Shown one piece after another: positions 13,481 to 41,800 of a stretch of DNA of 64,000 nucleotides. How positions within the stretch are numbered: the stretch's first letter is position 1; every line of letters starts with the position of its first letter. Under the pieces are notes generated by a model that saw only the letters and a list, made by a program, of their open reading frames with translations, did not search any database and was not told where the DNA came from. The position numbers were made by a program, and so were the translations under genes. The stretch comes from Eutreptiella sp. 'Long Island Sound 2002' (Eukaryota; Protista; Euglenida): the NCBI GenBank assembly GCA_964036045.1, contig OZ038378.1, forward strand, positions 26,040,001-26,104,000, read 5' to 3'.

Positions 13481-14059
13481 GACGGCTGCACGGGGGGCGA
13501 CTACAACCGGTCCTGATGCGACCCACCCCCCAGCTATCTGTCAAAACTCGGGGGGGGGGGGGGGGGGGGGGGGGGGTAGCTGGGGGGGGGGTCAGCTGGG
13601 GGGTGTAGGGGGGGATTTGCCGTGGGGGGGGTTTCCAAGGTGGGGGGGCTTGCGCGCGACCCACTATTACCACATGCATACCTCCTGGGGGGTGTGTGTC
13701 TGGGGGGTTGGGGGTACGGAGGTATGTATGCGATGATAGCGCTTTCTCGTCATTGCCGAGAAGAAAGTCTTAAGGGTCGCCGTGTTGCCCCCCTCCCCCC
13801 TCCCCCCTTCCCCCTCCGCCCCTGTTCGCCCCCACCCCCCGGTTAGTTTGTGAGAAAAATTCCTGAGGCTTGGTTAGAGTTGGGGTTTAAAAGAAGAAAT
13901 GGATGGACTTCCGCTTAGAGGTCCTTGAAAAGTTCCCCCTCTGAGGAGGAGGAGGAGGAGGAGTCTCGGCGGGCGCGCTTCGAATGAAGCTCACGTTGGG
14001 CTTCGTCCCGCCTCTTTTTGTTGCGCTTCCCAACGCTCTTAAGAGGCCGAGATCGCTCA

Positions 14060-18855: not shown

Positions 18856-18892
<37 letters not shown>

Positions 18893-19070
18893 TTGGAGGG
18901 GGGGGGGTTCAGGGAGGGGCGATTGGGGGGGGGGGGCGGTCGGGAGGGTCAGTTGGGGGGGGGGGTCCAGGTGGGGCGATTTGGGGTGGTGGGGGGGGGG
19001 GCAGGCTCCCGTTACCTCCCCTTGCCCTCCCTCTGGGGTGAGAGCTTGGGCTAGGGTTAGGGCTAGGGTC

Positions 19071-22000
19071 ACCGAGCTGGTGGAACCAGTCTTGGTTTTA
19101 TAACCCTTTTCACCGAGCTGGTGGAACCAGTCTTGGTTTTATAACCCTTTTTAGTGTCTAGGGTGGACCTACCAGGTTTAGCAGCAGCAGCAGCAAGCAG
19201 CAGCAAGCAGCAGCAAGCAAGCAGCAGCACGCGCGAAATGGGGAAAAATCAGAACTCCGTCGTGGTGCTTCAGATTCAGCTGAAATTTTGGTGGATGATA
19301 CCTATGGGTGTGAAGTACAATCACACAAAGTTTGAGCAAGAAACTCAACGGTGGCGGCCGGGAACGGGATTCGCAAGTGGCGGACCTCAGTTTCAAAAAC
19401 TGCAGTTTAGGGCCAAAAACAGCCATTTTTGGGCCAAAAAAGCCCTGGAACACATTCAAAACGGCCAAATGAAGGGAAACGGTGGGTACACTGCACATGT
19501 GGCTTGACTTCCCCATGTCAACGAGCTCTTTGCGCCCCTCTGACTCCATGATATGTCCCGGAAACGGCCCAAAAAGGCCCCCAAAAGCTCCAAATGCCGA
19601 CAGCCACAAACCAAGAATAGGCCATATCTTTGGCTACATGGCTCAAAATGCGATTCCGAGGGCACCTACTCCACCCACAACCCCCCACTTTTTGTGGTTT
19701 CCACCCCTCAGAATTGCCTCAAAGGACGCCTAGACCCCAATACCTAGGCCCACTAGGCTGCGGCAAGCTGCAAGCTCAAGCCCAAACATGTGGGTGCCCA
19801 AATGGGTCAACAGGGTCCAGTAGGGGCAAAAAGATGACTTTTCTCAAAAATGATCCTAGACCATGTGCGACGCTAAAACAAGTGTTTTTGGACCGTTTTG
19901 AGCTTGTGGTGGCCCATTTTGGTCCTCCGAACATCCCAAAATGCCTTGAAAATGGGCTGTTTTGGGACCAAAAATGGGTCAAAAATGGGTCAAAAACACA
20001 TTTTTCCAAACCTCATCCTAGACCATATGGGGTGCACAAACGGGTGAAATGAGCCCATTTTGAGCCCATTTTGGGGCATTTTGGCCCCTTAGAAGTCCAA
20101 AAAGCCTTGAAAGTGGGCCTCGTGGTGATGGGGTTCACTTGCAAGCTGATTTCACTTTGTCAAGAGCCATCAATGTGTGAATCATTCTTGATGTCCCTCA
20201 CCAGTCATAGCTGATGTTCCCCTCCCCCACCAGCTCGGTCCCAATATTCAGTCTTGATTAGGGTCTAGGGTGGACCTACCAGGTTTAGCAGCAGCAGCAG
20301 CAAGCAGCAGCAAGCAGCAACAAGCAGCACGCGCGAAATGGGGAAAAATCAGACATCCGTCGTGGTGCTTCACATTCGGCTGAAATTTTGGTGGATGATA
20401 CCTATGGGTGTGAGGGACAACCACACAAAGTTTGAGCCAGAAACTCAACAGTGGCGGCCGGGAATGGGTGTCGCAAGTGGCGGACCTCAGTTTCAAAAAC
20501 AGCAGTTTAGGGCCAAAAACAGCCATTTTTGGGCCAAAAGAGCCCTAGAACCCATTCAAAACGGCCAAGGAAAGGGAAAGGGTGGGTACACTCCATGTGC
20601 GGCTTGACTTTCTTGTGTCAACGAGCTCTTTGCGGCCCTCTAACTCCATGATATGTCCCGGAAACGGCCCAAAAAGGCCCCCACAAGCCCCAAATTTTGT
20701 GCAGATTGGCTGGCGACAGCCACAAACCAAGAATAGGCCATATCTTTGGCTACATGGCTCAAAACGCGATTCCGAGGGCACCTACTCCACCCGCAACCCC
20801 CCTCGTTTTGTGGTTTCCACCCCTCAAAATTGCCCAAATGGACGCCTAGACCCCCGTACCCAAGCCCAGTAGGCTGCGGCAAGCTGCAAGCTCAAGCCCA
20901 AACAGGTGGGTGCCCAAATGGGTCAATAGGGTCCAATAGGGGCAAAAAGATGACTTTTCTCAAAAATGATCCTAGACCATGTGCGACGCTAAAACAAGTG
21001 TTTTTGGACTGTTTTGAGCTTGGGGTGGCCCATTTTGGTCCTCCGAAAATCCCAAAATGCCTTGAAGATGCGTTGTTTTGTGACCAAAAATGGGTCAAAA
21101 ATGGGTCAAAAATGCATTTTTCCAAAACTCATCCTAGACCATTTGGGGTGCACAAACGGGTAAAATGAGCCTATTTTGAGCCCATTTTGGGGCATTTTGG
21201 CCCCTCACAAGTCCACAAAAGCCTTGAAAGTGGGCCTTGTGGTGAAGGGGATCACTTGCAAGCTGATTCCACCCTGTCAACGGCCTTCAATGTGTAACTC
21301 ATTGGTATCCCTCACCATTCATATCTAATGTTCCCTCCCCCACCAGCTCGGTCCCAATATTCAGTCTTGATTAGGGTCACCGAGCTGGTGGAACCAGTCT
21401 TGGTTTTATAACCCTTTTTAGTGTCTAGGGTGGACCTACCAGGTTTAGCAGCAGCAGCAGCAAGCAGCAGCAAGCAGCAGCAAGCAGCAAGCAGCAGCAC
21501 GCGCGAAATGGGTAAAAATCAGAACTCCGTCGTGGGGCTTCATATTCGGGTGAAATTTTGGTGCATGATACCTATGGGTGTGAAGTACAATCACACAAAG
21601 TTTGAGCAAGAAACTCAACGGTGGTGGCAGGGAACGGGATTCGCAAGTGGCGGACCTCAGTTTCAAAAATGGCAGCTTAGGGCCAAAAACAGCCATTTTT
21701 GGGCCAAAAAAGCCCTGGAACACATTCAAAACAGCCAAACGAAGGGAAACGGTGGGTACACTTCACGTGCGGCTTGACTTCCCCGTGTCAACGAGCTCTT
21801 TGCGGCCCTCTAACTCCATGATATGTCCCGGAAACGGCCCAAAAAGGCCCCCAGAAACTTCAAATGCCGAGAGCCACAAACCAAGAATAGGCCATATCTT
21901 GGGCTACATGGCTCAAAATGCGATTCCGAGGGCACCTACTCCACCCGCAACCCCCCACTTTTTGTGGTTTCCAGCCCTCAGAATTGCCCAAACGGACGCC

Positions 22001-23670
22001 TAGACCCCAATACCTAGGCCCACTAGGCTGCGGCAAGCTGCAAGCTCAAGCCCAAACAGGTGGGTGCCCAAATGGGTCAACAGGGTCCAGTAGGGGCAAA
22101 AAGATGACTTTTCTCAAAAATGATCCTAGACCATGTGCGACGCTAAAACAAGTGTTTTTGGACCGTTTTGAGCTTGTGGTGGCCCATTTTGGTCCTCCGA
22201 AAATTCCAAAATGCCTTGAAAATGGGTTGTTTTGGGACCAAAAATGGGTCAAAAATGCATTTTTCCAAACCTCATCCTAGACCATTTGGGGTGCACAAAC
22301 GGGTGAAATGAGCCCATTTTGAGCCCATTTTGGGGCATTTTGGCCCCTTAGAAGTCCAAAAAGCCTTGAAAGTGGGCCTTGTGGTGATGGGGTTCACTTG
22401 CAAGCTGATTCCACTTTGTCAAGAAGCATCAATGCGTGAATCATTCTTGATGTCCCTCACCAGTCATAGCTGATGTTCCCTCCCCCACCAGCTCGGTCCC
22501 AATATTCAGTCTTGATTAGGGTTAGGGTCACCGAGCTGGTGGAACCAGTCTTGGTTTTATAACCCTTTTTAGTGTCTAGGGTGGACCTACCAGGTTTAGC
22601 AAGCAAGCAGCAAGCAAGCAGCAAGCAGCAAGCAAGCAGCACGCGCGAAATGGGTAAAAATCAGAACTCCGTCGTGGTGCTTCGGATTCGGGTGAAATTT
22701 TGGTGCATGATACCTATGGGTGTGAAGTACAATCACACAAAGTTTGAGCAAGAAACTCAACGGTGGCGGCCGGGAACGGGATTCGCAAGTGGCGGACCTC
22801 AGTTTCAAAAACTGCAGTTTAGGGCCAAAAACAGCCATTTTTGGGCTTAAAAAGCCCTGGAACACATTCAAAACGGCCAAATGAAGGGAAACGGTGGGTA
22901 CACTCCACGTGCGGCTTGACTTCCCCATGTCAACGAGCTCTTTGCGCCCCTCTGACTCCATGATATGTCCCGGAAACGGCCCAAAAAGGCCCCCAGAAGC
23001 TCCAAATGCCGACAGCCACAAACCAAGAATAGGCCATATCTTTGGCTACATGGCTCAAAATGCGATTCCGAGGGCACCTACTCCACCCACAACCCCCCAC
23101 TTTTTGTGGTTTCCAGCCCTCAGAGTTGCCCAAACGGACGCCTAGACCCCAATACCTAGGCCCACTAGGCTGCGGCAAGCTGCAAGCTCAAGCCCAAACA
23201 GGTGGGTGCCCAAATGGGTCAACAGGGTCCAGTAGGGGCAAAAAGATGACTTTTCTCAAAAATGATCCTCGACCATGTGCGACGCTAAAACAAGTGTTTT
23301 TGGACCGTTTTGAGCTTGTGGTGGCCCATTTTGGTCCTCCGAACATCCCAAAATGCCTTGAAAATGGGCTGTTTTGGGACCAAAAATGGGTTAAAAATGG
23401 GTCAAAAATGCATTTTTCCAAACCTCATCCTAGACCATTTGGGGTGCACAAACGGGTGAAATGAGCCCATTTTGAGCCCATTTTGGGGTATTTTGGCCCC
23501 TCAGAAGTCCAAAAAGCCTTGAAAGTGGGCCTTGTGGTGATGGGGTTCACTTGCAAGCCGATTCCACTTTGTCAAGAGCCATCAATGTGTGAATCATTCT
23601 TGATGTCCCTCACCAGTCATAGCTGATGTTCCCTCCCCCACCAGCTCGGTCCCAATATTCAGTCTTGATT
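19071..23670 (+). repeat. Tandem array A: four ~1.1-kb units
   Basis: Heads ACCGAGCTGGTGG at 19071/19112 (41-bp head duplication), 21379 and 22530; unit 2 is headless from ~20260. Tails CCACCAGCTCGGT+CCCAATATTCAGTCTTGATT end at 20259, 21372, 22517 and 23670. Confidence 0.95.
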
Positions 23671-23776
23671 AGGGTTAGGGTTAGGGTCATGGGTAGGGTT
23701 AGGTGTAGGGTTAGGAGCAGGCTGAGGGTTGGGGTGGGCGTTAGAGTCAAGGTTGGGTTCAAGTATAGCGTTGGGG
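23669..23776 (+). repeat. Interstitial telomere-like hexamer tract (3 perfect TTAGGG decaying into variants)
   Basis: TTAGGG x3, then TCATGG GTAGGG TTAGGT GTAGGG TTAGGA.. in 6-nt phase. Confidence 0.9.
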
Positions 23777-25860
23777 TGCTCCACCGCCTGGGCGGGGAGG
23801 GATGCTACGTGGGCAAGGGGAATGAAAAAATTTTTCGGGCGCCTTCGGCGCCACCATATGTATGGCCAGTAGCTATTCATCCTTGGTAACTAAGTGGGCC
23901 CGGAGGGGGGGGGGGGGGGGAGTCGCGTACCGGGACCGAGGAGACGGCCCCCCCGTGTCGGTGACATATGGTCCTTGACGCTTAGACTTGGACGGGCGAA
24001 ATTTTACACACATTTGACAAACAACTTTTGGTAGTCCACCTTTGAAATACAATCTTTCACGGACATTCGTTGAGAGACAGGGTTTGACAGGCGATCATTG
24101 ACAGCCTTTGAGACACAGTCATTGACAGGCAAACTTTGATAGAAAACGTGTGGTAGAGAAATAGCGCTTCTCTGACACACAGTGATTGCCATATACAACC
24201 TACCTGGAAAAAAGCGACAGCCTCAGGCCTACACTCTGTTGGGAGAAAATAGCACCGGTCCTCAAACTCCATTGCTCTAGATGATAGCAGATGATACTTG
24301 CTCTCGGACCCTGCACTGCTAAAACAACAGACAACAGTGGCAGCAAGACCACACTGTGGGCCAACAACAATACAAGACATCTTTGACGGATAGTCTTTGA
24401 CAAAACAGTAAATGACGTACAGTCTTGGACAGACGGTGTTTGATCGGTGGTCTTGCATGGGCAGTCCTGAACAGGCTGCCCATGACAGACAATCCTTTAC
24501 ATGCAGCCCTTGACAAATGGGCTGCGACAGGCTCTCCTTGACACACCGCCTGTGCCAAGCTATTTTTGATGCAAAGTGGGCATAGGTCATCGGCCAGGTT
24601 GACATGACCGTGTGCATATGGCATGGAGCACGTGGTGCAGACATTGGGAACAAACAGTACCCAGGGCTTCGGCGTTTGTCATCCTCTCTGGAAGCCCGGG
24701 TGGCGCTTTCACAGGCGAGGGGTGTACCACGGGCAGAACCTGACCAGGGGGAGGGGCACGCAAATAAGGAGGACTGGCCGAGTGGCGGTGACAGTGAATC
24801 CCATTCCAACACGCACATAAACAGGAAATCACAGCCAGCCATGAGCCATCAGCCGATGGAACATGTAAATGGTTCCCACGTCCATGCAAGATCCCTGCCC
24901 ATGGCACCCATGGTGACAGCCCATGTCGCCTGCCAGGTCCACTTGGATTAAAAATGACTAAGATCAATACTTATTGGCCAGGGATCGCGACGCTATCCGT
25001 TTCAATGAAAACCCTGACATTTCATGAAACGCCTTGGGAGGGAGGGGGGGGCATGTCTGCAGGGAAGCGCTGTGCATTGTGGAGGATAGCGTGGATAATA
25101 AAGCTGTCCTTCTTTGGGGGGGGGGGGTCCCATCTCCAAATCTGGGCAACATCTTGGGGACGTTTTGCAAGCCTACGCACCTTATTTCTTGATATAAGTT
25201 GCAGGAGCATGCCACAGGATGGAGTCACATGCGCAGGTGTTGCTTCGCTTCATGCTTCGCTTTGCTTCGTCTTCCAATGATTTCTTCACTGTGTACAGGT
25301 ATGTCGTCTCCCTTGTGACATGGCTGTTTGTGACTGTTTGTGTCACGTCTCACCATGTGTGACCATGGCCCAGGACCACGGATCCTGCCCTCATCACTTA
25401 AAGCGAGACCGCCCCTGACAGCCCATCCCTGAACAAGCCAGGAGGAGCAGGAACCCCCCCCCTCGCCCCCCATTCTAGGCGGGCACATACACAGGGATGG
25501 AGGCGGGAAGCGTTTCAACACTGCTACCCCCAAACTTCGATATGGCAGACAGGAGTACCCTCAGCCACCGGGGACGCCGCCCAGGCGCACTGCAGAGCCC
25601 CCTGCAAGCGCCTCAAGAGGTCACCACAATTGCGGCCTCGGGCACCATATCTTGGGGTACGTTGCGGGGGCGCTGCATGCTACAGCATCACGAGCTGCCT
25701 GGGGCGTCTGCACGTTGCAGGCGCGCCGCCGAATGCACCTGGGGGGGGGTGGGATTGTTGCCCCCACCACCAAGCCGCACGTGCTGCATGGCACACTGCA
25801 CTGCAGAGCTACTCGGGGGTGCACCAACATCCCCCCACCCGAGCCGCTCTATTGGGGCAC

Positions 25861-25991
25861 TCAGAGCCATTTGATCCGCCGGAACATCCACACGATGAAG
25901 CAGTTGATGCCCGCGATGACCCCCCAGAACGCCCAGTAGCCGTACTTCCACTCGAGCCAGGGCATGTGCGTGAAGTTCATGCCAAACAGGC
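25861..25991 (-). CDS. corA: CorA exon 7 (GMN motif, TM2, stop)
   Basis: TTTGTAG| GLFGMNFTHMPWLEWKYGYWAFWGVIAGINCFIVWMFRRIKWL*. Confidence 0.95.
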
Positions 25992-28900
25992 CTACAAAGG
26001 GGCAGGACATGAGTGTGAGTCGCAAACTTCATCACATGCGTTGCCTCAGAGGGTCCCGCCGCAGCAGTGCCTACTGATCAGGAGAGGAAAGTGGGAGCTG
26101 GCAAATGCTCCGCCGCTGATGTTGACTGGCTCAGTGCTGTGACGTCCCATGCACCAACGGCGTGGGGGAAATTCAGTTTTTTTGGGGGGGGGGGCGGGCA
26201 TTCAAGTTTACATTCCGAACCCCCCCCCCCTCAAAGGGGCTCCCACGACTGAGGCCCTTACCGACCCAGCGACAGGGTCCATCAGGGGGTTCAGGGGGGG
26301 GGGGGGGAGGAGGAGGACCCATGGGCCTCACACCCAACCAGGCTTGAGGTGCATGTCTCAACAGACCTGGACTTCAGCCACTCCTCTCGTCTCCACCTCA
26401 GACGATACTTGTCTGGAATCTGGGGTACATCCCCCCTGTAGGGCATTTCGTAAAACCTAGTATGCGCTGTAGTAAAACCTAGTAAAATGTAGTAAAACCT
26501 AGTAAAATGTAGTAAAACCTAGTTAAAAAATTTTTTTTGAAAAAAAAATTTCAAACAGTTTTTTTCTTTACTAGGTAAAAAAACAAAATTTTGAAAAAAA
26601 AATTTTCCTTACTAAGTCAATTCCCGGCCACTGTTGCCAGTGGCGCCCCACCCAGGCCGAACCATGCATCTTGTGAAGAAGGACTTCATGTATGTTTCGA
26701 AACCCTTTGGAGGAGAGGGGGGGGGTTTGCAAAGGGGGACAAAATCAGAATTGGCTGCCTAACCCCTGCGTTCTGGAGGGCCCACAAGTGGGCGGAAATG
26801 CTACGTCACCCCTTCATTCTCGATGATCCCCAACAAAAGGGACAAAATCAAAGCACAAAAAAAACAAAAAAAACAAAAACGAAAATTTTCCCATGATGTC
26901 TATGACTCAGCCTAGGGCTTTGCAGATTACACCCAATGGGGTCTGAACCCATGACCTTCCACTTGTAAAGGCACTGATTTACCCACTGGGGTATGAGAAA
27001 TTTGGAGGAATTGGATTTTCCCCCATTTCTCCCCATTTCTCCCCATTGTTCCCCATTTTCCCCCATTTTTCCTCCCCTTGTGGTGCCGTTGGCCACCCCC
27101 CCAACCCCAACCTGTCAGACAAAAATGGTTTTTTGGGGGGTTTTCACACCATGTTTCCCCCATTTACCCACATAAATCACAAAAAATCTCACCCCAACGC
27201 CCATTTCCCCCCATTTTCCCCCATTTTCCCGCATGTTTCCCCATTTTTCCTCGGGAGCTTTCGCCAATGCACCCCCCCCCCCCCCACAGCCTTGTTGCCA
27301 ACCGAACCCTTGATTTTTGGCCTTTTCAGCCCCAAAATTTCCCATTTTTCCACCAAACAATCTAAATTCCCCTCGTTTATCCCCATTTCCCCCCATTTTT
27401 CCTACTTTGGCCCATTTCCCAGATAGTGTTCCGCTAAATGTACCCAAAGTGGGTACTTCTAAGCTCTGCCATGGTGAGTCCGCCGTAAAAAGCTAGGGAC
27501 AAGGGTCTTGAAGCCTGGTAAGGGGGTGTGTTGAATTGATATGCGATGGAATGTCTGTTGTTTGTACCCCTATTGGATGTGAGCTGTCCAATTTTGGGAG
27601 GTTTGATTTAAAACGTGTCCCGGTGTCCAAGGCTTTGGCACCCGCAGACACAAAGAACCCCACCCCCACTGCCCATGCAAGATAGTACCATTAGACTTAA
27701 CCATCCCATTTTACCCTTAATTGACCTTTGTTTGTTCTCAAGAATAGATCGGAAATTGCTATCTCAAACCTAGGCTATTTCACCTGCCTCCCCCTCTTTT
27801 CATTATGGCATTGGCAGCTGTCCTGGACGCACTATCCACAATGTCTGGGACCACGTCTAAAAAAACGCCTCAGTAGTGAGAACATAGGTGCCGCGGGTTT
27901 TCAAATGAAGTAAGTAACCAACGCTTGGCAACACCCAAAGGATGTCCCCCACCAACCTGTGTTTCTCATACGCCGGTCGGTGCTCCACCAAAGCTTCAAT
28001 ATAAGATTTCAAGTTTGTGAAAGTAGGATTGTGTCATGGCACAAAACTGCACCAAAACTTGTCAGTGCTCCACCAAAGCTTCAATATAAGATTTCAAGCT
28101 TGTGAAAGTAGGATTGTGTCACGGCAGAAAACTGCACCAAAACTTGTCAACACATGTCCCCAAGCGTTGTTGGACCATGAGGAGGACCAAGCCGTGTACG
28201 ATTCCACGACAAAAGAGTGGTCTAACGCAATAGGAATATACACGGGATAAATCCTGTAAGATCCGGTATCCCGGCACACAATAGCAAAAGCCCCGGCACA
28301 ACAATGGTTTGGGATCCATGAAGCATGAGTGGTGACAAATGTCGCGTTGTCTAACACATGCTAAACATTATGAATGACTAGCTGCGGGCATTGTTGGAGC
28401 CCATCGCAGGCAAGAAGAGACCGGCCAAACCGAAGAATGCAATGGCCCACCAGCTTGAGCGGCTTGCTAAAGGGTGTAATATCTCCGGTCCATCAAAGGA
28501 TGCACCTGTTGCGCTTGCTAGTCATGGCGTGCTCTAGCCATGACATGGGGTCGCACCATCGCTAGGTCCACGTCCAGGAGGTAAACTGTGACCCCTAAGA
28601 AGTGTAAATAGGCTAGAGACATATCATGACCGGTGTTGTGGCAACAACATAAGAACTTCAGCACTTGTTGGTAGCAAGGCATGTGGGGACCCACGCGCCA
28701 GTGCACAGTAAAAAGGCCATGCAACGTCGAAGCACTCACCGCAGCACTCACCGCAGGGTTGCCATGTTGCAGCTGGCGTGAATAGGTGGGTGTGAAAGAA
28801 CTCGGAAATGCTAGAAACCACTGCAGGGGTGAACCTTGCCAAAACAGCATCTATTGGCTGCATGAAGAGGGCGGAGACAAAATTATGCCACCAGGTAACC

Positions 28901-31900
28901 CTACAGATTGCACAAGCAGCCACATGATCGCAAACACGCATAGCTGATAAAGTTTGCTAGCGGTGTTGACCACCAGCGGAGCCTGTGTAGATGTGTAAAG
29001 GGAATCTAGCTGACAATTCAATCATGTATGGAACCCAAGCCGCCCGCCACGACTTAGAGAAGAGCTTAAAATTCTATTGCCTTTGGCAGTGCACCTCGAA
29101 GAGAGGCTGTCAGTCAGTTAGACAGGCCAGCAGTCAGTCAGACAGAAACACACACTTTGGGTTTTTTGTCAGTGGCAGACACGTGTCCAAGGAGTGGGGA
29201 GAACAACTGGGCGCAGAGTTGGCAGTGGCCGAATGGTAATGCAGGCGGCCGCAGACATTTTGGTGGGCGGTTCAAACCCTGGTGAGGCCAATACGGCAGC
29301 GGCGCCGCCGCCGGCGTCCACCAACCGGGATTCGAACCGCCGACCAAAAAATCTGCGGCTTGGTGTGTTACCATTCGACCGGGGGTGGATGTGACACAAC
29401 TGTGTCTCCCATTGCTTGGAGCCTTCTCAGCGAAAACTTTTGACCCCCCCCCCCACCACACACACCCCCACCCCCCCCTCAAAAAACTGTTATCCAGTTT
29501 TAGGGGATAGAGGCCTCAAAATCAAAAAATCCATTGGGGGATGGTCTTATTGGGCAAAATAATGATTTTACAAGGGGTTGGACATCAAATATCATGCCTT
29601 GGGGTATGCTACGCGAATGACCCCAAAAAAGGGGGGGTATACGACGCCCGCGCCTGCGCTTGATCTAACAACCTCTCTTCGGGGTGATTTATCCATGAGG
29701 TGATGAACATGTGGCAATGTGCATGCCCAAAACCCTAACATACCTTCGACTAGCTTGCATCTACCGGAGTGTTACCCAAGAGAAGTAGCAGTCATTGTAA
29801 GTGTACCTCATGAAGTATCGTGTAGGCAACCACCACAAGCTATTTATGGCCAGATGAAACTAGGTTAAACACTGAACTTGCCTTAAAAAGATTGATCACA
29901 CAACGGTGCAAAGACTCAACTGAGTCTAAACATCAAATGGTATAATCCATGTATCCTAATCAACTAAGGGAGCCACAAGGAATGAATAGACCATTGCCCA
30001 TGTAGAGCACCGTGGAGCGACTCCCGCCAACAGGCCCACCTCCCATATGGACAGCAGAGGATACTGCCATGGCCACGAGAAGCTCAACCACAAAGACATG
30101 GAACCCCGCTCCCGTCAAGATGTCATGAAGGATTTGATGGACGACAAACCTGTACACATGGTGGATATCATCCACCACTATCACCGCTGGTTTCCCCTTA
30201 GCCCATTGGAAAAGGATATGATCATGCAAAACCTCAAGCAAATTGACCGCAAACAATTTTTTTTATGGGCAAATGGTGTGGGGGGGGTATGATGCCATGT
30301 CACACAACATCGACAAGTAATGATGGACTAGAATCATGGCAATTAATTGCCATACCGTAGTCCGATTTAAAAGTGGTCAGGCGTTGGAAACCGGTCTGTG
30401 AGGTAGTTTGTTGGGAGGGGCATAAAAATTGCTTGTAGCAATTCTGGAACTGCCTTTTCCTCTAAAATTTCACCGACAAAGCCAACATCACGAAAAAGGA
30501 GGAATTTGCGACAACCCGACAATAGGTCCCGTGCCAAGCTCAAAGTCAGCACCGGGAGGGGGAAAGACCAACCAACACCAGCCCAGTGTACCACATGTTG
30601 TAGTTCACTCCTAGTTAGTTGAACAACGGGTGAAAGATGTTGCCGCCGAAACACATTTAGTGCTACCACCGCATGTAATGCTGTAGGTACTTCATAACCA
30701 ACCACAATTGTGGGAGAAACATGTGCTGTGCAAGGATGATGCAGCAGGCGTCGATGTCGGTAGTCCTTCTTTCCCGGAACAACTAAAAACACCTTAGAGG
30801 AAACCTGTGGCACCATATCTAATGTGGGCTCCAAAGCTGCTTGAGTAATGGACAAAAGTAGGTGTATGCAGGATCCACCCGAACCCACCTTAAGCCATAC
30901 TAGTAAGCTACTAAGGTGCCCTTGCACATTGCCACCAAGTCCCTGTCCCAGAACCGGTGTAGCATGTACCCCATTTGTGGTCTGAACTGCTTTGTGGCCA
31001 TGCGTTACAGCAGCTGAGTCACAAAGGAGGGCTCAGACAAAGGCTAGTTTTCCCAGGGCCTGTCACACCACCCTAGACTAAAACGGGAAATTGGGGCAAG
31101 ATCCTGCCAGTTTGGGATGATGTTCCACACCATCACTGCACCGCTGACCTGGATCACAAAGGGTCACAGGGTGTGGGCCACCTTGTCGCATTCTCAATGC
31201 AATTAAAATCCATCACTCTACAATGCACCATGCCTCCCATGTTGTTGTACAGACCTCCCACAACACTTCGGGTGACTGTTGCAGTGGTGCTGAACTATGG
31301 CCCAGATTTTTTCATATTTTGTTTGCTTACGGGTGGCTCAGGGGGGGGGGGGGGTGAAAACGCCCACTAAGCCCTGGGGGTGGAAAATTTTACGGGTGGG
31401 GAAAATTTTTAGGGGAGGAATAAAAAAATGGGGGGGTGTAAGGGGGACTTTTTGTCCTATAATTTGCACAACATCAGTGCAATCTGGGGTAGCTGGGGGG
31501 ATAATCCCTCGAGATGCCAGGCGGCGTGGGGTTGAGGGGTCCATAGGAGATCCTGCACATCCCCCTTACCTGGTAGCGGCCATACATTGCACAAGCGTGT
31601 CACCTTTATCTGAGGGCTGGGGAGGAGGATCAGGGCTTGGGGTCACGGCCCAACTGACGTTGTTCAGGTGAGCATCCAGCATGTCAGCAGGGCACCTGTC
31701 AAGAATTGCGCGGGAATAAACAGGGCGGTGATGAGCGTTAGCAGGTACATGGTACGATTCATTGCATCCTGCTGCATGTATGAGTAATCATCCTTGAGGG
31801 ATCGTGAGGAGGCCTGGGCACAGTGGAACAAGGGGGAGGGCAGGGCACAGTCAGACTGTGTTGTGAAGGAGAGTGGGCTGTCACTGAGACAGAAAATTGG

Positions 31901-34900
31901 CAAGGGGAGCAGGAAAGGGGGTGTGTGAACAGGTTGCGATCAGGGTAAGAGAGTTGTTTGCAGTATGGGCAAGGGGGGCGAGAAGATCCAGAGCAGGTAG
32001 GCGGGGGATAGGATGCCCTTTGCAGGGAATTTGCTGGGACCACTGAAGCGGTGCTAGACCGGTGCTCTCCAACTGGTTTGTGTACCATGGCTCGCCTATG
32101 AAGACCATGCAAATGGGCCATGGAGGGTGCAAAAACGGACCCCATCACAAAGTAGGCACAATCTGTGCGCCAACGGGCAGCGGCAAAACAACGGCTGTGG
32201 TTTGGTACAGCCAGGATTTTTTTTCAAAAAACGCCAAACACTCACTTAACGCCAGGACGGAAACGATAGAACATAAAACAAAAGGCTGGAAAAAAAGGTG
32301 AGGACCCTGCCGTCCAGAAAAAATATGGGGGGGCAAGACTATTGGCAGATGGGACACGGTACACACAGTGCGTTGCCTCCGACATGGGAGGCGAATTTTT
32401 CGTAGCTAGTTGGGGCAATTGACCCCCCCCCACCCCTCCCTTTTCCCTAATTTTTACCCCAATTTTTTCCATTTTTGAAAATCATGCAGAAGAGGCCATA
32501 GAATCTTGTAGCCGTTTGCTACAGGGTCCAAGCAATTTCTGCATCAAAAATTCCTTCCTTTCATTTTTCAAGACACAGTCTTTGATATATCATTGTGTAC
32601 ATGTACTTCAATGTGCCACCAGTCAAATATTTGTCAAAAACGATTTTTTCACCATTTTTAATCGCAAAAGAAGGGGTCCTGAATGCTGCTAGTTGGATCA
32701 AAAAGCTACAAAAGAGGGCCACAAACTCCAACAAGAAAAACCCCAATGCTTTGTCCCAACTGGGCTATATACACCTGCAGCGACGCCACGTAATCAAGAA
32801 TAGTCAAAATGTGATCACGCAAATCATTGTAGTGCCACTGCAGCTCCGTCATATTCCGTTGCCTTGCGTGCTCTGTGAGTGAGGCTACAGTGGATGCCAG
32901 CGGCCGCAGTACAAACAAAAGGTTGTTCATCTCTTGCAAAGTAGTTTGAATGACACGGAAAATGGTAGCGTACTGTTGTTGCGCAATGTTGGGACCGCCG
33001 GTCTTCGGCCGCTCGGTGCAGAGCAGATCACGCACCTTGTCCAGCTGCATTCTGAGAGAGGAGAGAAGCGATGCATATGTGTATGCTGCAGTCATGATCT
33101 GCGATCATACAAAAAACACACAGACACGCAGAATGCACTGCTCCAGTGCATGCTTCCACTAATTTGCACAAAGTACATTCATGGACTGGTTTGAGGATAA
33201 ATTGCAATTTGGAATCATTTGCCATTTCTCCGGTCCTGCAGGGATTTCATATTGCTGTGGGCAGAAGGAGTTGGGGGGTTCAGATTGATTCCCTACTGAT
33301 TGCCTCCTTCGATTGCGTTTTGGTATTCTGTTATTCAGTCCAGCAGCATTTATGCTGCCCATTGCCACCGTGCGTCAGTCCGAATATGTTTTTCATCCAT
33401 TATTGAGTTCTCCAGAAAAATCCGAGTGTTTTGAGTATAGACACATGGGGTGAAAAACCATTTTTTCACCCTCTGCTGCATCAAGCAAATTTTCCTGATA
33501 GCTCCTTTGGCGCCGCCGGTCCGGCACTTCCCAGCCAATTTCCAAGAGGGAGGAAGGGGGGGGGGGGGGTGTCGGCGTAAAGGGTCCGGGCCCGGCGTCC
33601 CGGGCCTGGCCCACTCTCCACCTTCGTGCGGAGGGTGGTCAGGACAAACATTACGAAGATTGTTGCAAAATCTGTTTCTGTCTACAACTGTTTCAGTGGT
33701 AACAATGTCCAAAAAAAATTGAATTTTTTAGATTACATTCTACCTATGTACAATGTATGATCAGCTCAGGCATGACACCGTTCCATGGGCTGCATTCTAC
33801 TATACATTGGATTCACCCCCTTGAGTTGTGAGAAGATCGGGGCGTTGTTGAGGGCTGTGGTCGGTTACTGAAGGTTTTGAAGCCTTCTGGAGGGTCGTCA
33901 ACGGATGTTTAATGTTGTCTCAGGCTGTTCAGGGTTGCTAATGATTGTCGTAGGGTTTACCAGGCTTTTGCCCTGAAGCACCTTCAACAAGGCACCAGTG
34001 GCCGCTGCCCCCCCACGAGAGTATTCTGGTGCGGCAGTACTGACGGATAGTCCCTTGGGATCAAGCTGCAGCCAAAGCTTTGTGCCATTCTGATGAAATT
34101 GGGTTTGTGTGGGTGAAGATCAGTATTGTGAGTTTGGGTTATTGTGAAGGGAGACCAGGCACAGATTCAGGCCGCAGCTTCGAACCAGCCGTGGTGTTGT
34201 AGCTGCATTCCTTAAAACTTGACGGTGTTCCACCAGTGTTCCTCTCTGGCATTGTTGTTGAGGTTGTGAAGGGGCAAGGGCATTAAGGGTTGGCCAGGGT
34301 GGTCCATTGTTCAGCGTTGCTCAGCATGTGGAGTGATGAGGATCGTTGGAGGGTCGTTGAGGGGTGTGGAGTGTCTGTTAGATCTACACTTTCTGCGTCT
34401 CGCAGCAGCTACTGCAAGAATATGGCTTGCGCTGCGGCGTAAACGTGGCCCATTGCTGTGAGCCCCGGTAGGTCACCAGCTCACCAGCCTGCAACACCTT
34501 CCAGAGTACCCGACGTTTGTCAGCTTGTTCCCAAATCAGCCTCAGCCTTGGCTCTCAGTTTTGTCTCTCGTCGCCAACGCCATCAACAGCCGAGCAGTGT
34601 CACCGACCTCACCACGGCGGACAGATACACCGCAGCACACAACTCTTTTGCAGGTATTGAAAGAATCTGAAGCATGTTGGAAGGGTACACAGGATCAATG
34701 TTGCTGAGGTCCAAGGCTGTTCAGGGTTGCTAGTGATTGTTGAGGGGCTTGCCCTTGGCAACCGTTGAAAAGGCTTTTGCCCTCAAGCACCTTCAACAAT
34801 GCAACACTCTGTAACCCCTCGACAACCCTGTCCAAGGCGGGAGAAAGAACACCATGACGTCCCTGACACAAAGGCCGAACCATAAACCCAAGTCAAGGGG

Positions 34901-35850
34901 ACCCAGAACCACAACCATAACCGTGAGCCTGGACATACTACCTGAACCGGTTCATCATGGGGTATAAGCGATCGACCTCCTTGTCGATGATCATGTGCAA
35001 CAGCCAGTGTGCATCCGTAGTGCGAAGTTTGGTTCCTGGGGTGGCAATATTGGACTTGCAGATTTCCACAGTCTTGGAGGGGCTGTTGAAGAAACTCAGC
35101 AGCGTGTTGTCCTGACAGGGCAAGCGAAAAAGGGTGGGGCACCAAACCTACGGAGCCTGAACCCGGGACGTAATGACTGGAGATGAACACAAATTGCAGC
35201 CTTGGCCCAGAGGCATCTAGAGGCCATTTTTTTTGAAGAAATGGATGGCATACAGCTCCCTTGTGGCAGAGTCGACGCACACAGGGCCACAACAGACCAG
35301 CCGAGTGCAGATAGAAGACGATTGGAAGGGATCACGGGGGGGATGTCTCCTCGCTTTTATACGCGACCCCCCCCCCAGTAGAAGTGGGCCGAAGGCCCCC
35401 AAGAGGGGGGGGGGGGGGGGGTTCAGGGAGGGGCGACGGGGGGGGGGGGGCGGTTGGGAGGGTCGGTTGGGGGGGGGGGTCCAGGTGGGGCGATTTGGGG
35501 TGGTGAGGGGGGGGCGGGGGGGGGGGGGGGCAGGCTCCCCTTACCTCCCCTTGCCCTCAATCTAACCATACCATCACCATAAACCTAACCCTAACCTTTG
35601 CAGCCAGTTGGTTTGGCCATGCCAGCCATGTCAATTGGGCTGCACAAGATCCCCGAAATTTCGTTCATGGCTGCTTTTGCCACATCATTGCTCTCCATTG
35701 TGGACCCCAACACTCATTCTAACCCGAGCCTAGGGTGAGAGCTAGAGCTAGGGGCAGGGCTAGGGTTAGGGTCACCGAGCTGGTGGAACCAGTCTTGGTT
35801 TTATAACCCTTTTTAGTGTCTAGGGTGGACCTACCAGGTTTAGCAGCAGC

Positions 35851-35881
<31 letters not shown>

Positions 35882-38800
35882 CGCGCGAAATGGGCAGAAA
35901 TCAGAACTCCGTCGTGGTGCTTTGGATTTGGGTGAAATTTTGGTGCATGATACCTATGGGTGTGAAGTACAATCACACAAAGTTTCAGCGAGAAACTCAA
36001 CGGTGGCGGCCGGGAACGGGATTCGCAAGTGGCGGACCTCAATTTCAAAAACTGCAGTTTAGGGCCAAAAACAGCCATTTTTGGGCCAAAAAGACCCTAG
36101 AACACATTCAAAACGGCCAAACGAAGGGAAACAGTGGGTACACTCCACGTGCGGCTTGACTTCCCCATGTCAACGAGCTCTTTGCGCCCCTCTGACTCCA
36201 TGATATGTCCCGGAAACGGCCCAAAAAGGCCCCCAAAAGCTCCAAATGCCGACAGCCACAAACCAAGAATAGGCCATATCTTTGGCTACATGGCTCAAAA
36301 TGCGATTCCGAGGGCACCTACTCCACCCGCAACCCCCCACTTTTTGTGGTTTCCAGCCCTCAGAATTGCCCAAATGGACGCCTAGACCCCAATACCTAGG
36401 CCCACTAGGCTGCGGCAAGCTGCAAGCTCAAGCCCAAACAGGTGGGTGCCCAAATGGGTCAACAGGGTCCAGTAGGGGCAAAAAGATGACTTTTCTCAAA
36501 AATGATCCTAGACCATGTGCGACGCTAAAACAAGTGTTTTTGGACCGTTTTGAGCTTGTGGTGGCCCATTTTGGTCCTCCGAAAATCCTCAAATGCCTTG
36601 AAAATGGGCTGTTTTGGGACCAAAAATGGGTCAAAAATGCATTTTTCCAAACCTCATCCTAGACCATTTGGGGTGCACAAACGGGTAAAATGAGCCCATT
36701 TTGAGCCCATTTTGGGGCATTTTGGCCCCTCAGAAGTCCAAAAAGCCTTGAAAGTGGGCCTCGTGGTGATGGGGTTCACTTGCAAGCTGATTCCACTTTG
36801 TCAAGAGCCATCAATGTGTGAATCATTCTTGATGTCCCTCACCAGTCATAGTTGATGTTCCCTCCCCCACCAGCTCGGTCCCAATATTAAGTCTTGATTA
36901 GGGCAAGGGTTAGGGTTAGGGTCACCGAGCTGGTGGAACCAGTCTTGGTTTTGTAACCCTTTTTAGTGTCTAGGGTGGACCTACTAGGTTTACCAGCAGC
37001 AAGCAGCAAGCAGCAGCACGCGCGAAATGGGTAAAAATCATAACTCCGTCGTGGTGCTTCGGATTCGGGTGAAATTTTGGTGGATGATACCTATGGGTGT
37101 GAAGTACAATCACACAAAGTTTCAGCAAGAAACTCAACGGTGGCGGCCGGGAACGGGATTCGCAAGTGGCGGACCTCAATTTCAAAAACTGCAGTTCAGG
37201 GCCAAAAACAGCCATTTTTGGGCCAAAAAGACCCTAGAACACATTCAAAACGGCCAAACGAAGGGAAACAGTGGGTACACTCCACGTGTGGCTTGACTTC
37301 CCCGTGTCAACGAGCTCTTTGCGGCCCTCTAACTCCATGATATGTCCCGGAAACGGCCCAAAAAGGCCCCCAGAAGCTCCAAATGCCGACAGCCACAAAC
37401 CAAGAATAGGCCATATCTTTGGCTACATGGCTCAAAATGCGATTCCGAGGGCACCTACTCCACCCGCAACCCCCCACTTTTTGTGGTTTCCAGCCCTCAG
37501 AGTTGCCCAAACGGACGCCTAGACCCCAATACCTAGGCCCACTAGGCTGCGGCAAGCTGCAAGCTCAAGCCCAAACAGGTGGGTGCCCAAATGGGTCAAC
37601 AGGGTCCAGTAGGGGCAAAAAGATGACTTTTCTCAAAAATGATCCTAGACCATGTGCGACGCTAAAACAAGTGTTTTTGGAGCTTGTGGTGGCCCATTTT
37701 GGTCCTCCGAAAATCCTCAAATGCCTTGAAAATGGGCTGTTTTGGGACCAAAAATGGGTCAAAAATGCATTTTTCCAAACCTCATCCTAGACCATTTGGG
37801 GTGCACAAACGGGTAAAATGAGCCCATTTTGAGCCCATTTTGGGGCATTTTGGCCCCTCAGAAGTCCAAAAAGCCTTGAAAGTGGGCCTCGTGGTGATGG
37901 GGTTCACTTGCAAGCTGATTCCACTTTGTCAAGAGCCATCAATGTGTGAATCATTCTTGATGTCCCTCACCAGTCATAGTTGATGTTCCCTCCCCCACCA
38001 GCTCGGTCCCAATATTAAGTCTTGATTAGGGCAAGGGTTAGGGTTAGGGTCACCGAGCTGGTGGAACCAGTCTTGGTTTTATAACCCTTTTTAGTGTCTA
38101 GGGTGGACCTACTAGGTTTACCAGCAGCAAGCAGCAAGCAGCAGCACGCGCGAAATGGGCAGAAATCATAACTCCGTCGTGGGGCTTCAGATTCGGGTGA
38201 AATTTTGGTGGATGATACCTATGGGTGTGAAGTACAATCACACAAAGTTTCAGCGAGAAACTCAACGGTGGCGGCCGGGAACGGGATTCGCAAGTGGCGG
38301 ACCTCAATTTCAAAAACTGCAGTTCAGGGCCAAAAACAGCCATTTTTGGGCCAAAAAAGCCCTAGAACACATTCAAAACGGCCAAACGAAGGGAAACAGT
38401 GGGTACACTCCACGTGCGGCTTGACTTCCCCGTGTCAACGAGCTCTTTGCGGCCCTCTAACTCCATGATATGTCCCGGAAACGGCCCAAAAAGGCCCCCA
38501 GAAGCTCCAAATGCCGACAGCCACAAACCAAGAATAGGCCATATCTTTGGCTACATGGCTCAAAATGCGATTCCGAGGGCACCTACTCCACCCGCAACCC
38601 CCCACTTTTTGTGGTTTCCAGCCCTCAGAATTGCCCAAATGGACGCCTAGACCCCAATACCTAGGCCCACTAGGCTGCGGCAAGCTGCAAGCTCAAGCCC
38701 AAACAGGTGGGTGCCCAAATGGGTCAACAGGGTCCAGTAGGGGCAAAAAGATGACTCTTCTCAAAAATGATCCTAGACCATGTGCGACGCTAAAACAAGT

Positions 38801-41800
38801 GTTTTTGGAGCTTGTGGTGGCCCATTTTGGTCCTCCGAAAATCCTCAAATGCCTTGAAAATGGGCTGTTTTAGGACCAAAAAAGGGTCAAAAATGCATTT
38901 TTCCAAACCTCATCCTAGACCATTTGGGGTGCACAAACGGGTGAAATGAGCCCATTTTGAGCCCATTTTGGGGCATTTTGGCCCCTCAGAAGTCCAAAAA
39001 GCCTTGAAAGTGGGCCTTGTGGTGATGGGGTTCACTTGCAAGCTGATTCCACTTTGTCAAGAGCCAACAATGTGTGAATCATTCTTGATGTCATAGCTCA
39101 TGTTCCCTCCGCCACCAGCTCGGTCCCAATATTCAGTCTTGATTAGGGCAAGGGTTAGGGTTAGGGTCACCGAGCTGGTGGAACCAGTCTTGGTTTTATA
39201 ACCCTTTTTAGTGTCTAGGGTGGACCTACTAGGTTTACCAGCAGCAAGCAGCAAGCAGCAGCACGCGCGAAATGGGTAAAAATCATAACTCCGTCGTGGG
39301 GCTTCAGATTCGGGTGAAATTTTGGTGGATGATACCTATGGGTGTGAAGTACAATCACACAAAGTTTCAGCGAGAAACTCAACGGTGGCGGCCGGGAACG
39401 GGATTCGCAAGTGGCGGACCTCAATTTCAAAAACTGCAGTTCAGGGCCAAAAACAGCCATTTTTGGGCCAAAAAAGCCCGGGAACACATTCAAAACGGCC
39501 AAACGAAGGGAAACGGTGGGTACACTCCACGTGTGGCTTGACTTCCCCGTGTCAACGAGCTCTTTGCGGCCCTCTAACTCCATGATATGTCCCGGAAACG
39601 GCCCAAAAAGGCCCCCAAAAGCTCCAAATGCCGACAGCCACAAACCAAGAATAGGCCATATCTTTGGCTACATGGCTCAAAATGCGATTCCGAGGGCACC
39701 TACTCCACCCGCAACCCCCCACTTTTTGTGGTTTCCACCCCTCAGAATTGCCCAAATGGACGCCTAGACCCCAATACCTAGGCCCACTAGGCTGCGGCAA
39801 GCTGCAAGCTCAAGCCCAAACAGGTGGGTGCCCAAATGGGTCAACAGGGTCCAGTAGGGGCAAAAAAATTAATTTTCTCAAAAATGATCCTCGACCATGT
39901 GCGACGCTAAAACAAGTGTTTTTGGACCGTTTTGAGCTTGTGGTGGCCCATTTTGGTCCTCCGAAAATCCCAAAATGCCTTGAAAATGGGCTGTTTTGGG
40001 ACCAAAAATGGGTTAAAAATGGGTCAAAAATGCATTTTTCCAAACCTCATCCTAGACCATTTGGGGTGCACAAACGGGTAAAATGAGCCCATTTTGAGCC
40101 CATTTTGGGGCATTTTGGCCCCTCAGAAGTCCAAAAAGCCTTGAAAGTGGGCCTCGTGGTGATGGGGTTCACTTGCAAGCTGATTCCACTTTGTCAAGAG
40201 CCATCAATGCGTGAATCATTCTTGATGTCCCTCACCAGTCATAGTTGATGTTCCCTCCCCCACCAGCTCGGTCCCAATATTAAGTCTTGATTAGGGCAAG
40301 GGTTAGGGTTAGGGTCACCGAGCTGGTGGAACCAGTCTTGGTTTTATAACCCTTTTTAGTGTCTAGGGTGGACCTACCAGGTTTAGCAGCAGCAGCAGCA
40401 AGCAGCAAGCAAGCAGCACGCGCGAAATGGGTAAAAATCATAACTCCGTCGTGGGGCTTCAGATTCGGGTGAAATTTTGGTGGATGATACCTATGGGTGT
40501 GAAGTACAATCACACAAAGTTTCAGCGAGAAACTCAACGGTGGCGGCCGGGAACGGGATTCGCAAGTGGCGGACCTCAATTTCAAAAACTGCAGTTCAGG
40601 GCCAAAAACAGCCATTTTTGGGCCAAAAAGACCCTAGAACACATTCAAAACGGCCAAACGAAGGGAAACAGTGGGTACACTCCACGTGTGGCTTGACTTC
40701 CCCGTGTCAACGAGCTCTTTGCGGCCCTCTAACTCCATGATATGTCCCGGAAACGGCCCAAAAAGGCCCCCAGAAGCTCCAAATGCCGACAGCCACAAAC
40801 CAAGAATAGGCCATATCTTTGGCTACATGGCTCAAAATGCGATTCCGAGGGCACCTACTCCACCCGCAACCCCCCACTTTTTGTGGTTTCCAGCCCTCAG
40901 AGTTGCCCAAACGGACGCCTAGACCCCAATACCTAGGCCCACTAGGCTGCGGCAAGCTGCAAGCTCAAGCCCAAACAGGTGGGTGCCCAAATGGGTCAAC
41001 AGGGTCCAGTAGGGGCAAAAAGATGACTCTTCTCAAAAATGATCCTAGACCATGTTTGGCGCTAAAACAAGTGTTTTTGGACCGTTTTGAGCTTGTGGTG
41101 GCCCATTTTGGTCCTCCGAAAATCCCAAAATGCCTTGAAAATGGGCTGTTTTGGGACCAAAAATGGGTTAAAAATGGGTCAAAAATGCATTTTTCCAAAC
41201 CTCATCCTAGACCATTTGGGGTGCACAAACGGGTAAAATGAGCCCATTTTGAGCCCATTTTGGGGCATTTTGGCCCCTCAGAAGTCCAAAAAGCCTTGAA
41301 AGTGGGCCTCGTGGTGATGGGGTTCACTTGCAAGCTGATTCCACTTTGTCAAGAGCCATCAATGTGTGAATCATTCTTGATGTCCCTCACCAGTCATAGT
41401 TGATGTTCTCTCCCCCACCAGCTCGGTCCCAATATTCAGTCTTGGTTAGGGTTAGGGTCAAGGGAAAGGTTTGGGGGTAGGGTTAGGAGTAGGCTGAGGG
41501 TTGGGGTGGGCATTAGAGTCAAGGTTGGGTTCAAGGATAATGTTGGGGTGCAAAGTGGACAAAATGGGCAAGGGGAATGAAAAAAAAAATTTCGGGCGCC
41601 TTCGGCGCCACCATATGTATGGCCAGTAGCTGTTGACCCTTGGCAACTAAGTGGGCCCGGAGGGCAGGGAGGGGGGGGGAGGGGGGGGGGGGGGAGTCGC
41701 GTACCAGAACCGAGGAGACGTCCCCCCGTGGAAGGGATCGTGGACGAGTGCAGAGGGCAGTCTGTAAGCTGTAGGCTGTTGAGGGCAATGGCCGTAGAGG

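Follow-up and report, generated by a model that had tools for sequence, protein, structure and literature searches.

What sets the distance between neighbouring copies of a repeat when the junctions between them are filled with telomere-type hexamers? This question was raised by a 64,000-nucleotide (nt) stretch of the Eutreptiella sp. 'Long Island Sound 2002' genome (C1:26,040,001-26,104,000, hereafter the window; assembly of 2.28 Gb in 2,317 contigs), which carries two head-to-tail arrays of a non-coding unit of ~1.14 kb, here termed family A and bounded as CACCGAG...CTTGAT. A sequence-only reading of this DNA had offered two explanations for the spacers, namely that telomerase extends the free 3' TT end of an intermediate before joining, or that the unit homes to the TT within TTAGGG tracts and takes flanking repeats with it. 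Our analysis indicates that family A is most probably a non-autonomous DNA transposon with Helitron2/HINE-type ends, inserted at a fixed phase in TTAGGG-like tracts, and that this fixed phase yields gaps of 6n nt. The element ends are CACCGAGCTGGTGG... and ...CCACCAGCTCGGTCCCAATATTCAGTCTTGAT, and a pattern search of the assembly returned 8,223 exact heads, corresponding to ~8,200 copies genome-wide.

Both arrays lie on the forward strand. Array A (19070-23669) begins with an older unit, Y (19070-19110 and 20259-21371; 1,154 nt when rejoined, 89.7% identical to the reference unit in an end-to-end alignment), whose head is interrupted by a younger full unit, X (19111-20258; 1,148 nt, 95.4%). It continues with a 6-nt gap, TAGGGT (21372-21377), unit 3, which is the reference unit (21378-22516; 1,139 nt), a 12-nt gap, TAGGGTTAGGGT (22517-22528), and unit 4 (22529-23669). 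The start of this array was also considered as a junction between a duplicated first head and a 'headless' second unit; this was rejected, as the structure is the nested insertion of X in Y. Array B (35773-41446) consists of five units (35773-36898, 36923-38026, 38051-39143, 39168-40291 and 40316-41446) and four 24-nt gaps, each TAGGGCAAGGGTTAGGGTTAGGGT (36899-36922, 38027-38050, 39144-39167 and 40292-40315). A smaller, related family, B, is represented on the reverse strand at 45822-46375 by a unit of ~0.5 kb (46327 down to 45822) and the tail of another copy (46328-46375), and the sequence-only reading had correctly described this 46327/46328 junction as having no spacer.

Gap lengths, insertion phase and host sites

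The family A spacers of the window measured 6, 12 and four times 24 nt and were all built of TAGGGT-phase hexamers. The same strings had been reported in the sequence-only reading, with coordinates one base off, together with the observation, which we also made, that the flanking T of the tail completes a TTAGGG in register. The genome-wide check of spacer length modulo 6 proposed there was run with a pattern of tail, 0-130 nt and head, which gave 3,490 exact matches, with 0 matches for the reversed-pattern control. Junctions were read from the first 100 places given by each search and from ~35 loci that were the best matches to one young unit. Among the first 99 listed junctions, 92 had spacers that were multiples of 6, and when identical gaps within an array were collapsed this was true of 68/72 (binomial p ~6e-48 at 1/6). 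An independent set of ~30 loci on many chromosomes gave 42/46 multiples of 6 (p ~2e-28 at 1/6). The off-multiple gaps (13, 16, 19, 21, 37, 47, 98 and 119 nt) resembled single-base indels or long degenerate tracts, and neither a gap shorter than 6 nt nor a direct CTTGAT|CACCGAG joint was found among ~145 sampled chromosomal junctions of family A. These data confirm that the hexamer-multiple spacing is real and far beyond chance.

The sequences on both sides of the units defined a single target. The first 100 listed heads, out of 8,223, all lay directly after a T, and the base at position -2 was other than G in only 222 heads, nearly all of which were still located in hexamer variants such as TAGGAT or AAGGTT. 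At the loci sampled, every array started after ...GGGT and every array ended before TAGGG..., and the logo derived from 79 heads and 76 tails read TAGGGT|TAGGGT, with 78-100% agreement per position (the bar marks the cut). Family A thus inserts in one orientation and in one hexamer phase, between the two T of TAGGGT|TAGGGT.

The targets were short, degenerate, interstitial TTAGGG-like tracts located in at least two other dispersed repeats and also in unique contexts. A genome pattern search identified 244 unoccupied copies of host repeat H1 (signature CCTAGGGTGAGAGC...AGTAGGCTGAGGGTTGG) and 101 unoccupied copies of host repeat H2 (signature poly-G, then TTAGGG...TTAGCCCTAGGG), with 0 control matches in each case. 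The tracts of H1 and H2 copies differed by 6-nt steps and contained characteristic variant hexamers, so that filled and unoccupied sites could be compared. Removal of the two units at one H1 locus (L027) left the common 83-nt unoccupied variant of this repeat, and removal of three units located in three adjacent T|T sites at another locus (L017) left the 89-nt unoccupied variant. In addition, an odd 54-nt gap at an H2 locus (L018; TAAGGT AAGGGT TAAAGT TAGCCC TAGGGT ...) corresponded to the unoccupied H2 sequence with one substitution. Within the window, array A is embedded in a host repeat of the H1 type (left half 18781-19069, right half 23670-23957, forward strand) with a degenerate TTAGGG tract inside, and array B in another copy (35331-35772 and 41447-41730, forward strand); the ~290 nt flanking the two arrays on each side are mutually homologous, with 78-83% identity. 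The gaps are therefore pre-existing tract between two same-phase insertion sites, and two copies in one tract lie 6n apart because the insertion phase is fixed and no target bases are added. Targeting of the TT in TTAGGG tracts by the unit is borne out by the logo and by the identity of filled sites minus their units with unoccupied host sites. The companion idea that it carries flanking repeats along applies only as a local duplication copying unit plus gap, as in array B, and is needless for most arrays.

Taken together, a copy inserts between the two T of TAGGGT|TAGGGT, in one orientation, with target bases neither added nor removed. Insertion leaves the adjacent T|T sites of the tract intact, so that later copies land in the same tract and are parted by whole hexamers of the old tract (6, 12, 18, 24 nt, etc.). 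The minimum gap of 6 nt is most simply explained by a requirement for GGGT on the 5' side of the cut, which the element end ...TTGAT lacks; the next usable site would thus lie one hexamer away. Some arrays, including array B, grew later by tandem duplication of unit plus gap. Movement itself would be carried out by a Rep/helicase (HUH) rolling-circle transposase cutting 3' of the T on the G-rich strand.

Element ends and competing explanations of the arrays

The arrays could also be read as a satellite, in which one ancestral unit with its spacer was amplified by unequal crossing-over and the gap lengths arose from hexamer slippage. Array B conforms to this description, since identity between its neighbours is 97.7-98.1%, against no more than 96.7% with copies elsewhere; this higher mutual identity and the four identical gaps lead us to conclude that it grew by duplication of unit plus gap. 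The long single-gap arrays at C1:22.17 Mb and C9:12.56 Mb and the higher-order patterns at C12:57.81 Mb point in the same direction. As a general cause, however, amplification is very unlikely. Of 34 adjacent pairs, 28 contained one or two units that were closer to a copy on another chromosome than to their neighbour; in one example, the two neighbours were 91.7% identical to each other and 99.0-99.5% identical to copies elsewhere. In this test the central unit of each locus had been picked as a good query match, which introduces a bias, and the unselected neighbours showed the same pattern. Unit 3 of array A likewise shares 98-99% identity with copies on other chromosomes and 95% with its right-hand neighbour; in a separate alignment made for pairwise comparison, the values were 98.9% for the best copy elsewhere and 96.8% for the neighbour. 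Most neighbouring units thus arrived separately, because their closer relatives lie on other chromosomes. Furthermore, amplification of one ancestral spacer is at odds with gaps that reproduce the host-specific tract sequence, with the occupation of at least three unrelated host contexts plus unique ones, and with the nested insertion in the window.

Long satellite-like arrays were observed at C9:12557751-12578479 (at least 15 copies), C1:14122411-14133029 (at least 9) and C1:22171680-22183292 (at least 10). Each of them shows one repeated gap or one repeated pre-head hexamer variant, e.g. TAGGAT, indicating local amplification after insertion.

To get a view of the element class, we examined its ends. 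A 13-nt repeat, ACCGAGCTGGTGG, is located 1 nt from the 5' end, and its inverted copy, CCACCAGCTCGGT, lies 19 nt from the 3' end; both copies are present in all nine window units and in copies genome-wide. A hairpin nested in the 5' repeat has a folding energy of -6.9 kcal/mol (z -3.5), with none of 200 shuffles as good, and is kept in family B by a two-sided change (CTGGT/ACCAG vs CTGGG/CCCAG). A second 5' hairpin contains AACCCT, complementary to AGGGTT and kept in families A and B. The family A unit also has an internal (AGC/AGCA)n microsatellite. The ends of the unit are precise and bear the inverted repeats, and neither a poly(A) nor a simple-repeat tail was found at its 3' end.

These features bear on a second explanation, that of a retroelement resembling a short interspersed element and moved by a telomere-repeat-specific reverse transcriptase priming on TTAGGG, either of the SART/TRAS-type non-long terminal repeat class or of an endonuclease-less, Penelope-like class. 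A strict hexamer target and orientation would be expected from such an element, as would head-to-tail stacks split by telomere repeats, comparable to those of SART1 (PMC7265360). Against it stand the lack of a 3' tail, the terminal inverted repeats and terminal hairpins, and the precise 5' ends (8,223 exact heads), with no range of 5' truncations. In addition, the scan of the window with Rfam returned no ribozyme or other RNA family, the unit's body shows homology with the leader of a RepHel DNA transposon (see below), and the unit is not at chromosome ends. A retroelement of this kind is accordingly very improbable, to about the same degree as a general satellite origin.

Slightly less probable still is a cut-and-paste or recombinase-type element that creates a 6-bp TAGGGT duplication, with one hexamer added per insertion. 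The three-unit stacks on longer tract variants would fit such a mechanism, and the duplication would be invisible on a hexamer tract; because of this, the off-tract cases decide on duplication. The second unit of an H1 locus (L025) sits off-tract at GGTTGGGT|TTAAGG, where other H1 copies read GGGTTTAAGG, and no bases were gained or lost. At the H2 locus L018, the first unit occupies TTGGGGT|TAAGGT, a sequence present only once in unoccupied H2 copies. The nested site of the window, CCCTTTT|TAGGGTC, contains 4 + 1 = 5 T, the same number as an intact head. None of the three sites shows a duplication, and the inverted repeats are asymmetric and not terminal on both sides, unlike what this alternative calls for. 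The structure of a solo head followed by a full unit, seen at window 19070-19111, recurs at C1:3132464-3132546; the unit's own head holds a secondary target, CCCTTTT|TAGTG/TAGGG, that was struck more than once.

The remaining explanation involves telomerase and, with it, the true telomeres. TTAGGG is the true telomere repeat in this genome, as observed at assembled chromosome ends: the left end of C11 consists of 5.3 kb of CCCTAA, the right end of C11 of >9 kb of TTAGGG and the right end of C27 of >2 kb of TTAGGG, all uninterrupted. No unit was found in these three terminal arrays (2 to >9 kb), nor in the 3.7 kb inside the C11 left telomere. Tails followed by at least 7 perfect repeats numbered only 17 genome-wide; none was at a chromosome end, the nearest lying 25, 104 and 561 kb away, with one of these wrongly oriented. 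The link to telomere biology, which the sequence-only reading had expected from either of its explanations, and the enrichment of units at true ends, which it had suggested looking for, therefore both found no support in the three assembled telomeres. The niche of family A is the short interstitial tract, and the element spares the three true telomeres sampled. The assembled ends C1:1-2000 and C1:200964161-200966160 (L059, L060) and C27:1-2000 (L063) lack telomere repeats, and the assembly is therefore not telomere-to-telomere for all chromosomes.

Although the flanking T of the tail continues TTAGGG in register and the gaps are hexamer multiples, synthesis of the gaps by telomerase at a free ...GATT 3' end, exposed in a linear or nicked intermediate, is the least credible explanation and almost certainly wrong, given that perfect in-phase hexamers make up 61% of gap hexamers vs 99.3-99.9% in four terminal telomere stretches, that the variant 39% (TAGGGC, TAGCCC, CAGGGT, TAAGGT and others) follow the same order as in unoccupied host tracts, that the register is fixed on the head side too, where telomerase would not enforce it, and that the L025 'gap' is plain host sequence beyond the tract.

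A coding relative in (TA)n tracts and the zero gap of family B

Over 600-740 nt, the body of the family A unit shares 74-78% identity with the 5' leader of a coding RepHel family. In an example on C6 (L043 and L067, C6:28324800-28341799), the head of this element is followed by an (AAGC)n microsatellite, the leader and an intact open reading frame (ORF) of 2,535 amino acids with Helitron_like_N, PIF1 and SAP domains and a DnaJ-like region. Its 3' end lies >3.9 kb past the ORF. Further copies (L046-L050, L068-L070) were located, and the >60 copies sampled formed one family with 92-100% amino-acid identity, which comprises >50 near-identical copies. Its members occupy (TA)n microsatellites, where they lie in both orientations and form stacks, and its termini, a head ACTACACCCCTCTCC and a subterminal inverted copy GGAGAGGGGTGTAG followed by ATTAGAGGAT, differ from those of family A.

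A partner with family A's own termini was sought in several ways. The region upstream of nine copies of the (TA)n family (L043, L046-L050 and L068-L070) held a (TA)n-type head or a (TA)n tract plus homologous leader; a family A head was never present upstream of these nine, including the most divergent subfamilies (92-93% amino-acid identity). Of seven further Rep matches, six belonged to the (TA)n family and one (L053) showed no match to it; another locus (L071) checked for the family gave no match either. Two candidate partners were discarded, as a 17-kb interval on C1 between two junctions turned out to be bounded by two separate arrays and a match limited to unit positions 1-963 was a normal unit carrying an indel. 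A pattern placed at the end of the leader homology, with positions set to 'not the unit's base', retrieved mostly other leader-type repeats, and its three oddest matches were a unit broken by a GC-rich repeat, leader-type repeats only, and a sequence with no unit match. In a DNA search with an 8-kb stretch of the coding element, the output was dominated by abundant, unrelated repeats.

Two observations were made alongside these searches. The L053 locus (C2:160894800-160895700) matches Helitron_like_N positions 3-190 with 92.8 bits and represents a further Rep lineage, unlike the (TA)n-family protein. At L074 (C5:30529600-30533099), a unit (positions ~1435 onward), 88% identical to the reference, is broken ~90 nt before its tail by a very GC-rich repeat laden with poly-C and poly-G.

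Several points weigh against a phase-fixed Helitron2/HINE-type transposon as the identity of family A. No coding element with family A's own head and tail was found among the 150 of 863 Rep candidates that were scored, so that we infer the proposed rolling-circle mechanism, rather than show it, from the anatomy and from the homology with a sister family that has different termini. The 2,535-amino-acid ORF itself contains no apurinic/apyrimidinic (AP) endonuclease (Exo_endo_phos) and no match to DUF6570 even at E <= 1. The 3' tail of family A folds weakly (-1 kcal/mol, z 0.5), its only palindrome being the 6-nt AATATT; the tail of family B folds at -7.6 kcal/mol (z -3.1), but there the hairpin encloses the repeat. 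With regard to the insertion data, the absence of target duplication rests on few off-tract or variant-tract cases, and the junctions come from the first 100 places of each search and from ~35 loci biased to young copies.

Family B raises the question of how units can abut with a gap of 0. This family is low-copy, with 45 exact tails genome-wide, 6 of which abut a head directly. Its 3' flanks often start with T|TAGG but are not hexamer tracts. On the simplest interpretation, family A requires GGGT before the cut, whereas family B accepts the T|T at an element's own end, or forms read-through concatemers; a looser, T|TAGG-like target would let family B units abut directly. The proposal that window 13.4-17.0 kb holds a third member of the family was abandoned, as neither ends nor body were common to the unit.

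Other features of the window were recorded. Long poly-G runs and G-rich repeats of 29-30 nt adjoin several of its repeats, including the host repeat of both arrays; such stretches lie at 13550-13603, 16919-16954, 18856-18965 and 35406-35527. Comparison of ten long window ORFs with Pfam gave a single match, unrelated to the element, to a C17orf113-type zinc finger (PF25431, E 2.9e-7) in a 315-amino-acid ORF at 3526-4473 on the reverse strand, which is possibly part of another transposon.

Relation to known systems and meaning of the finding

The closest counterparts of family A are the HINE/DINE-1-type non-autonomous elements of the Helentron-Helitron2 group (Thomas et al. 2014, PMC4067079) and HLE2 (HELIANO paper, PMC11417382), which are described as inserting at T|T without duplication and as carrying asymmetric inverted repeats, a nested 5' repeat and a microsatellite. 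Family A shares with them the T|T insertion with no target duplication, the asymmetric inverted repeats (13 nt, within the 12-16 nt of the definition, near the end on the 5' side and subterminal on the 3' side), the short inverted repeat nested in the 5' repeat, the internal microsatellite, the high copy number and the tendency to form tandem arrays. It differs from them in a target that comprises a full hexamer on each side in one orientation, and not TT or T-rich DNA only, in a 3' tail of 19 nt vs 38-60 nt with a weak stem-loop, and in its partner, since no element with common ends was found and the homology is limited to the leader of a RepHel family with other termini. The related 2,535-amino-acid ORF departs from Helentrons sensu stricto in having no AP endonuclease and from the HLE2 protein clade (PMC11417382) in lacking the DUF6570 marker.

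Telomere repeats are used as targets by other mobile elements. The telomere-capping Helitrons of Paramecium aurelia (BMC Biol 2026, PMC13085455), for which insertion into telomeric repeats was proposed, are coding elements located at true germline chromosome ends. They resemble family A in their absolute orientation bias and in the blocks of repeats left between copies. On the other hand, C-rich repeats lie 3' of their right end, where family A has G-rich ones, and family A is non-coding, resides in short interstitial tracts that belong to other repeats and does not occur in the three telomeres that we examined. SART1 and TRAS1 of Bombyx (PMC7265360, PMC2868851) also insert into telomere repeats in one phase and one orientation and form stacks split by whole repeats; these elements, however, move through RNA with an endonuclease and a reverse transcriptase of their own and end in poly(A) tails, whereas family A has inverted repeats, precise 5' ends and RepHel homology. 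The anatomy of family A excludes an RNA route. Unlike the Penelope-like terminal elements of the Athena/Coprina type, it gave no hammerhead or other Rfam match in the window, and no tail abuts a terminal array.

Within the same genome, family A resembles the (TA)n RepHel family in its terminal repeat, its microsatellite ((AAGC/AGC)n), the homologous leader, the subterminal inverted repeat with a short tail ending in GAT, and the stacking in a simple repeat. It differs in that the relative has the termini ACTACACCCCTCTCC / GGAGAGGGGTGTAG, codes for the 2,535-amino-acid protein, and targets (TA)n in both orientations, as expected for a self-complementary repeat. By sister family, the targets are (TTAGGG)n for family A, (TA)n for the coding family and T|TAGG-like sequences for family B. 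It is conceivable, though unlikely, that these families represent a lineage with a 'programmable' target, in which sisters with a homologous leader, a common end architecture and differing termini each home to another repeat at a fixed phase. The AACCCT of the second 5' hairpin is one hint of a target specified by DNA. If terminal DNA did specify the target, in the way that guide sequences beside the end hairpins do for IS200/IS605, these families would be the first eukaryotic HUH transposons of this kind.

A simple cause thus accounts for the spacing of the units, and telomerase need no longer be invoked. Family A is a very abundant and recently active transposon, most probably of the Helitron2/HINE type, with a full hexamer as target on each side of the cut. 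The first description of Helitrons targeted to telomere repeats dates from 2026 and concerns a ciliate, whose chromosome ends they cap; here the strand polarity is the opposite and the niche is another one. Family A and its (TA)n relative lend themselves to a comparison of how target choice is made by rolling-circle transposases, and the arrays show how short interstitial tracts resembling telomeres can be built up by mobile DNA to kilobase arrays and satellite-like repeats.

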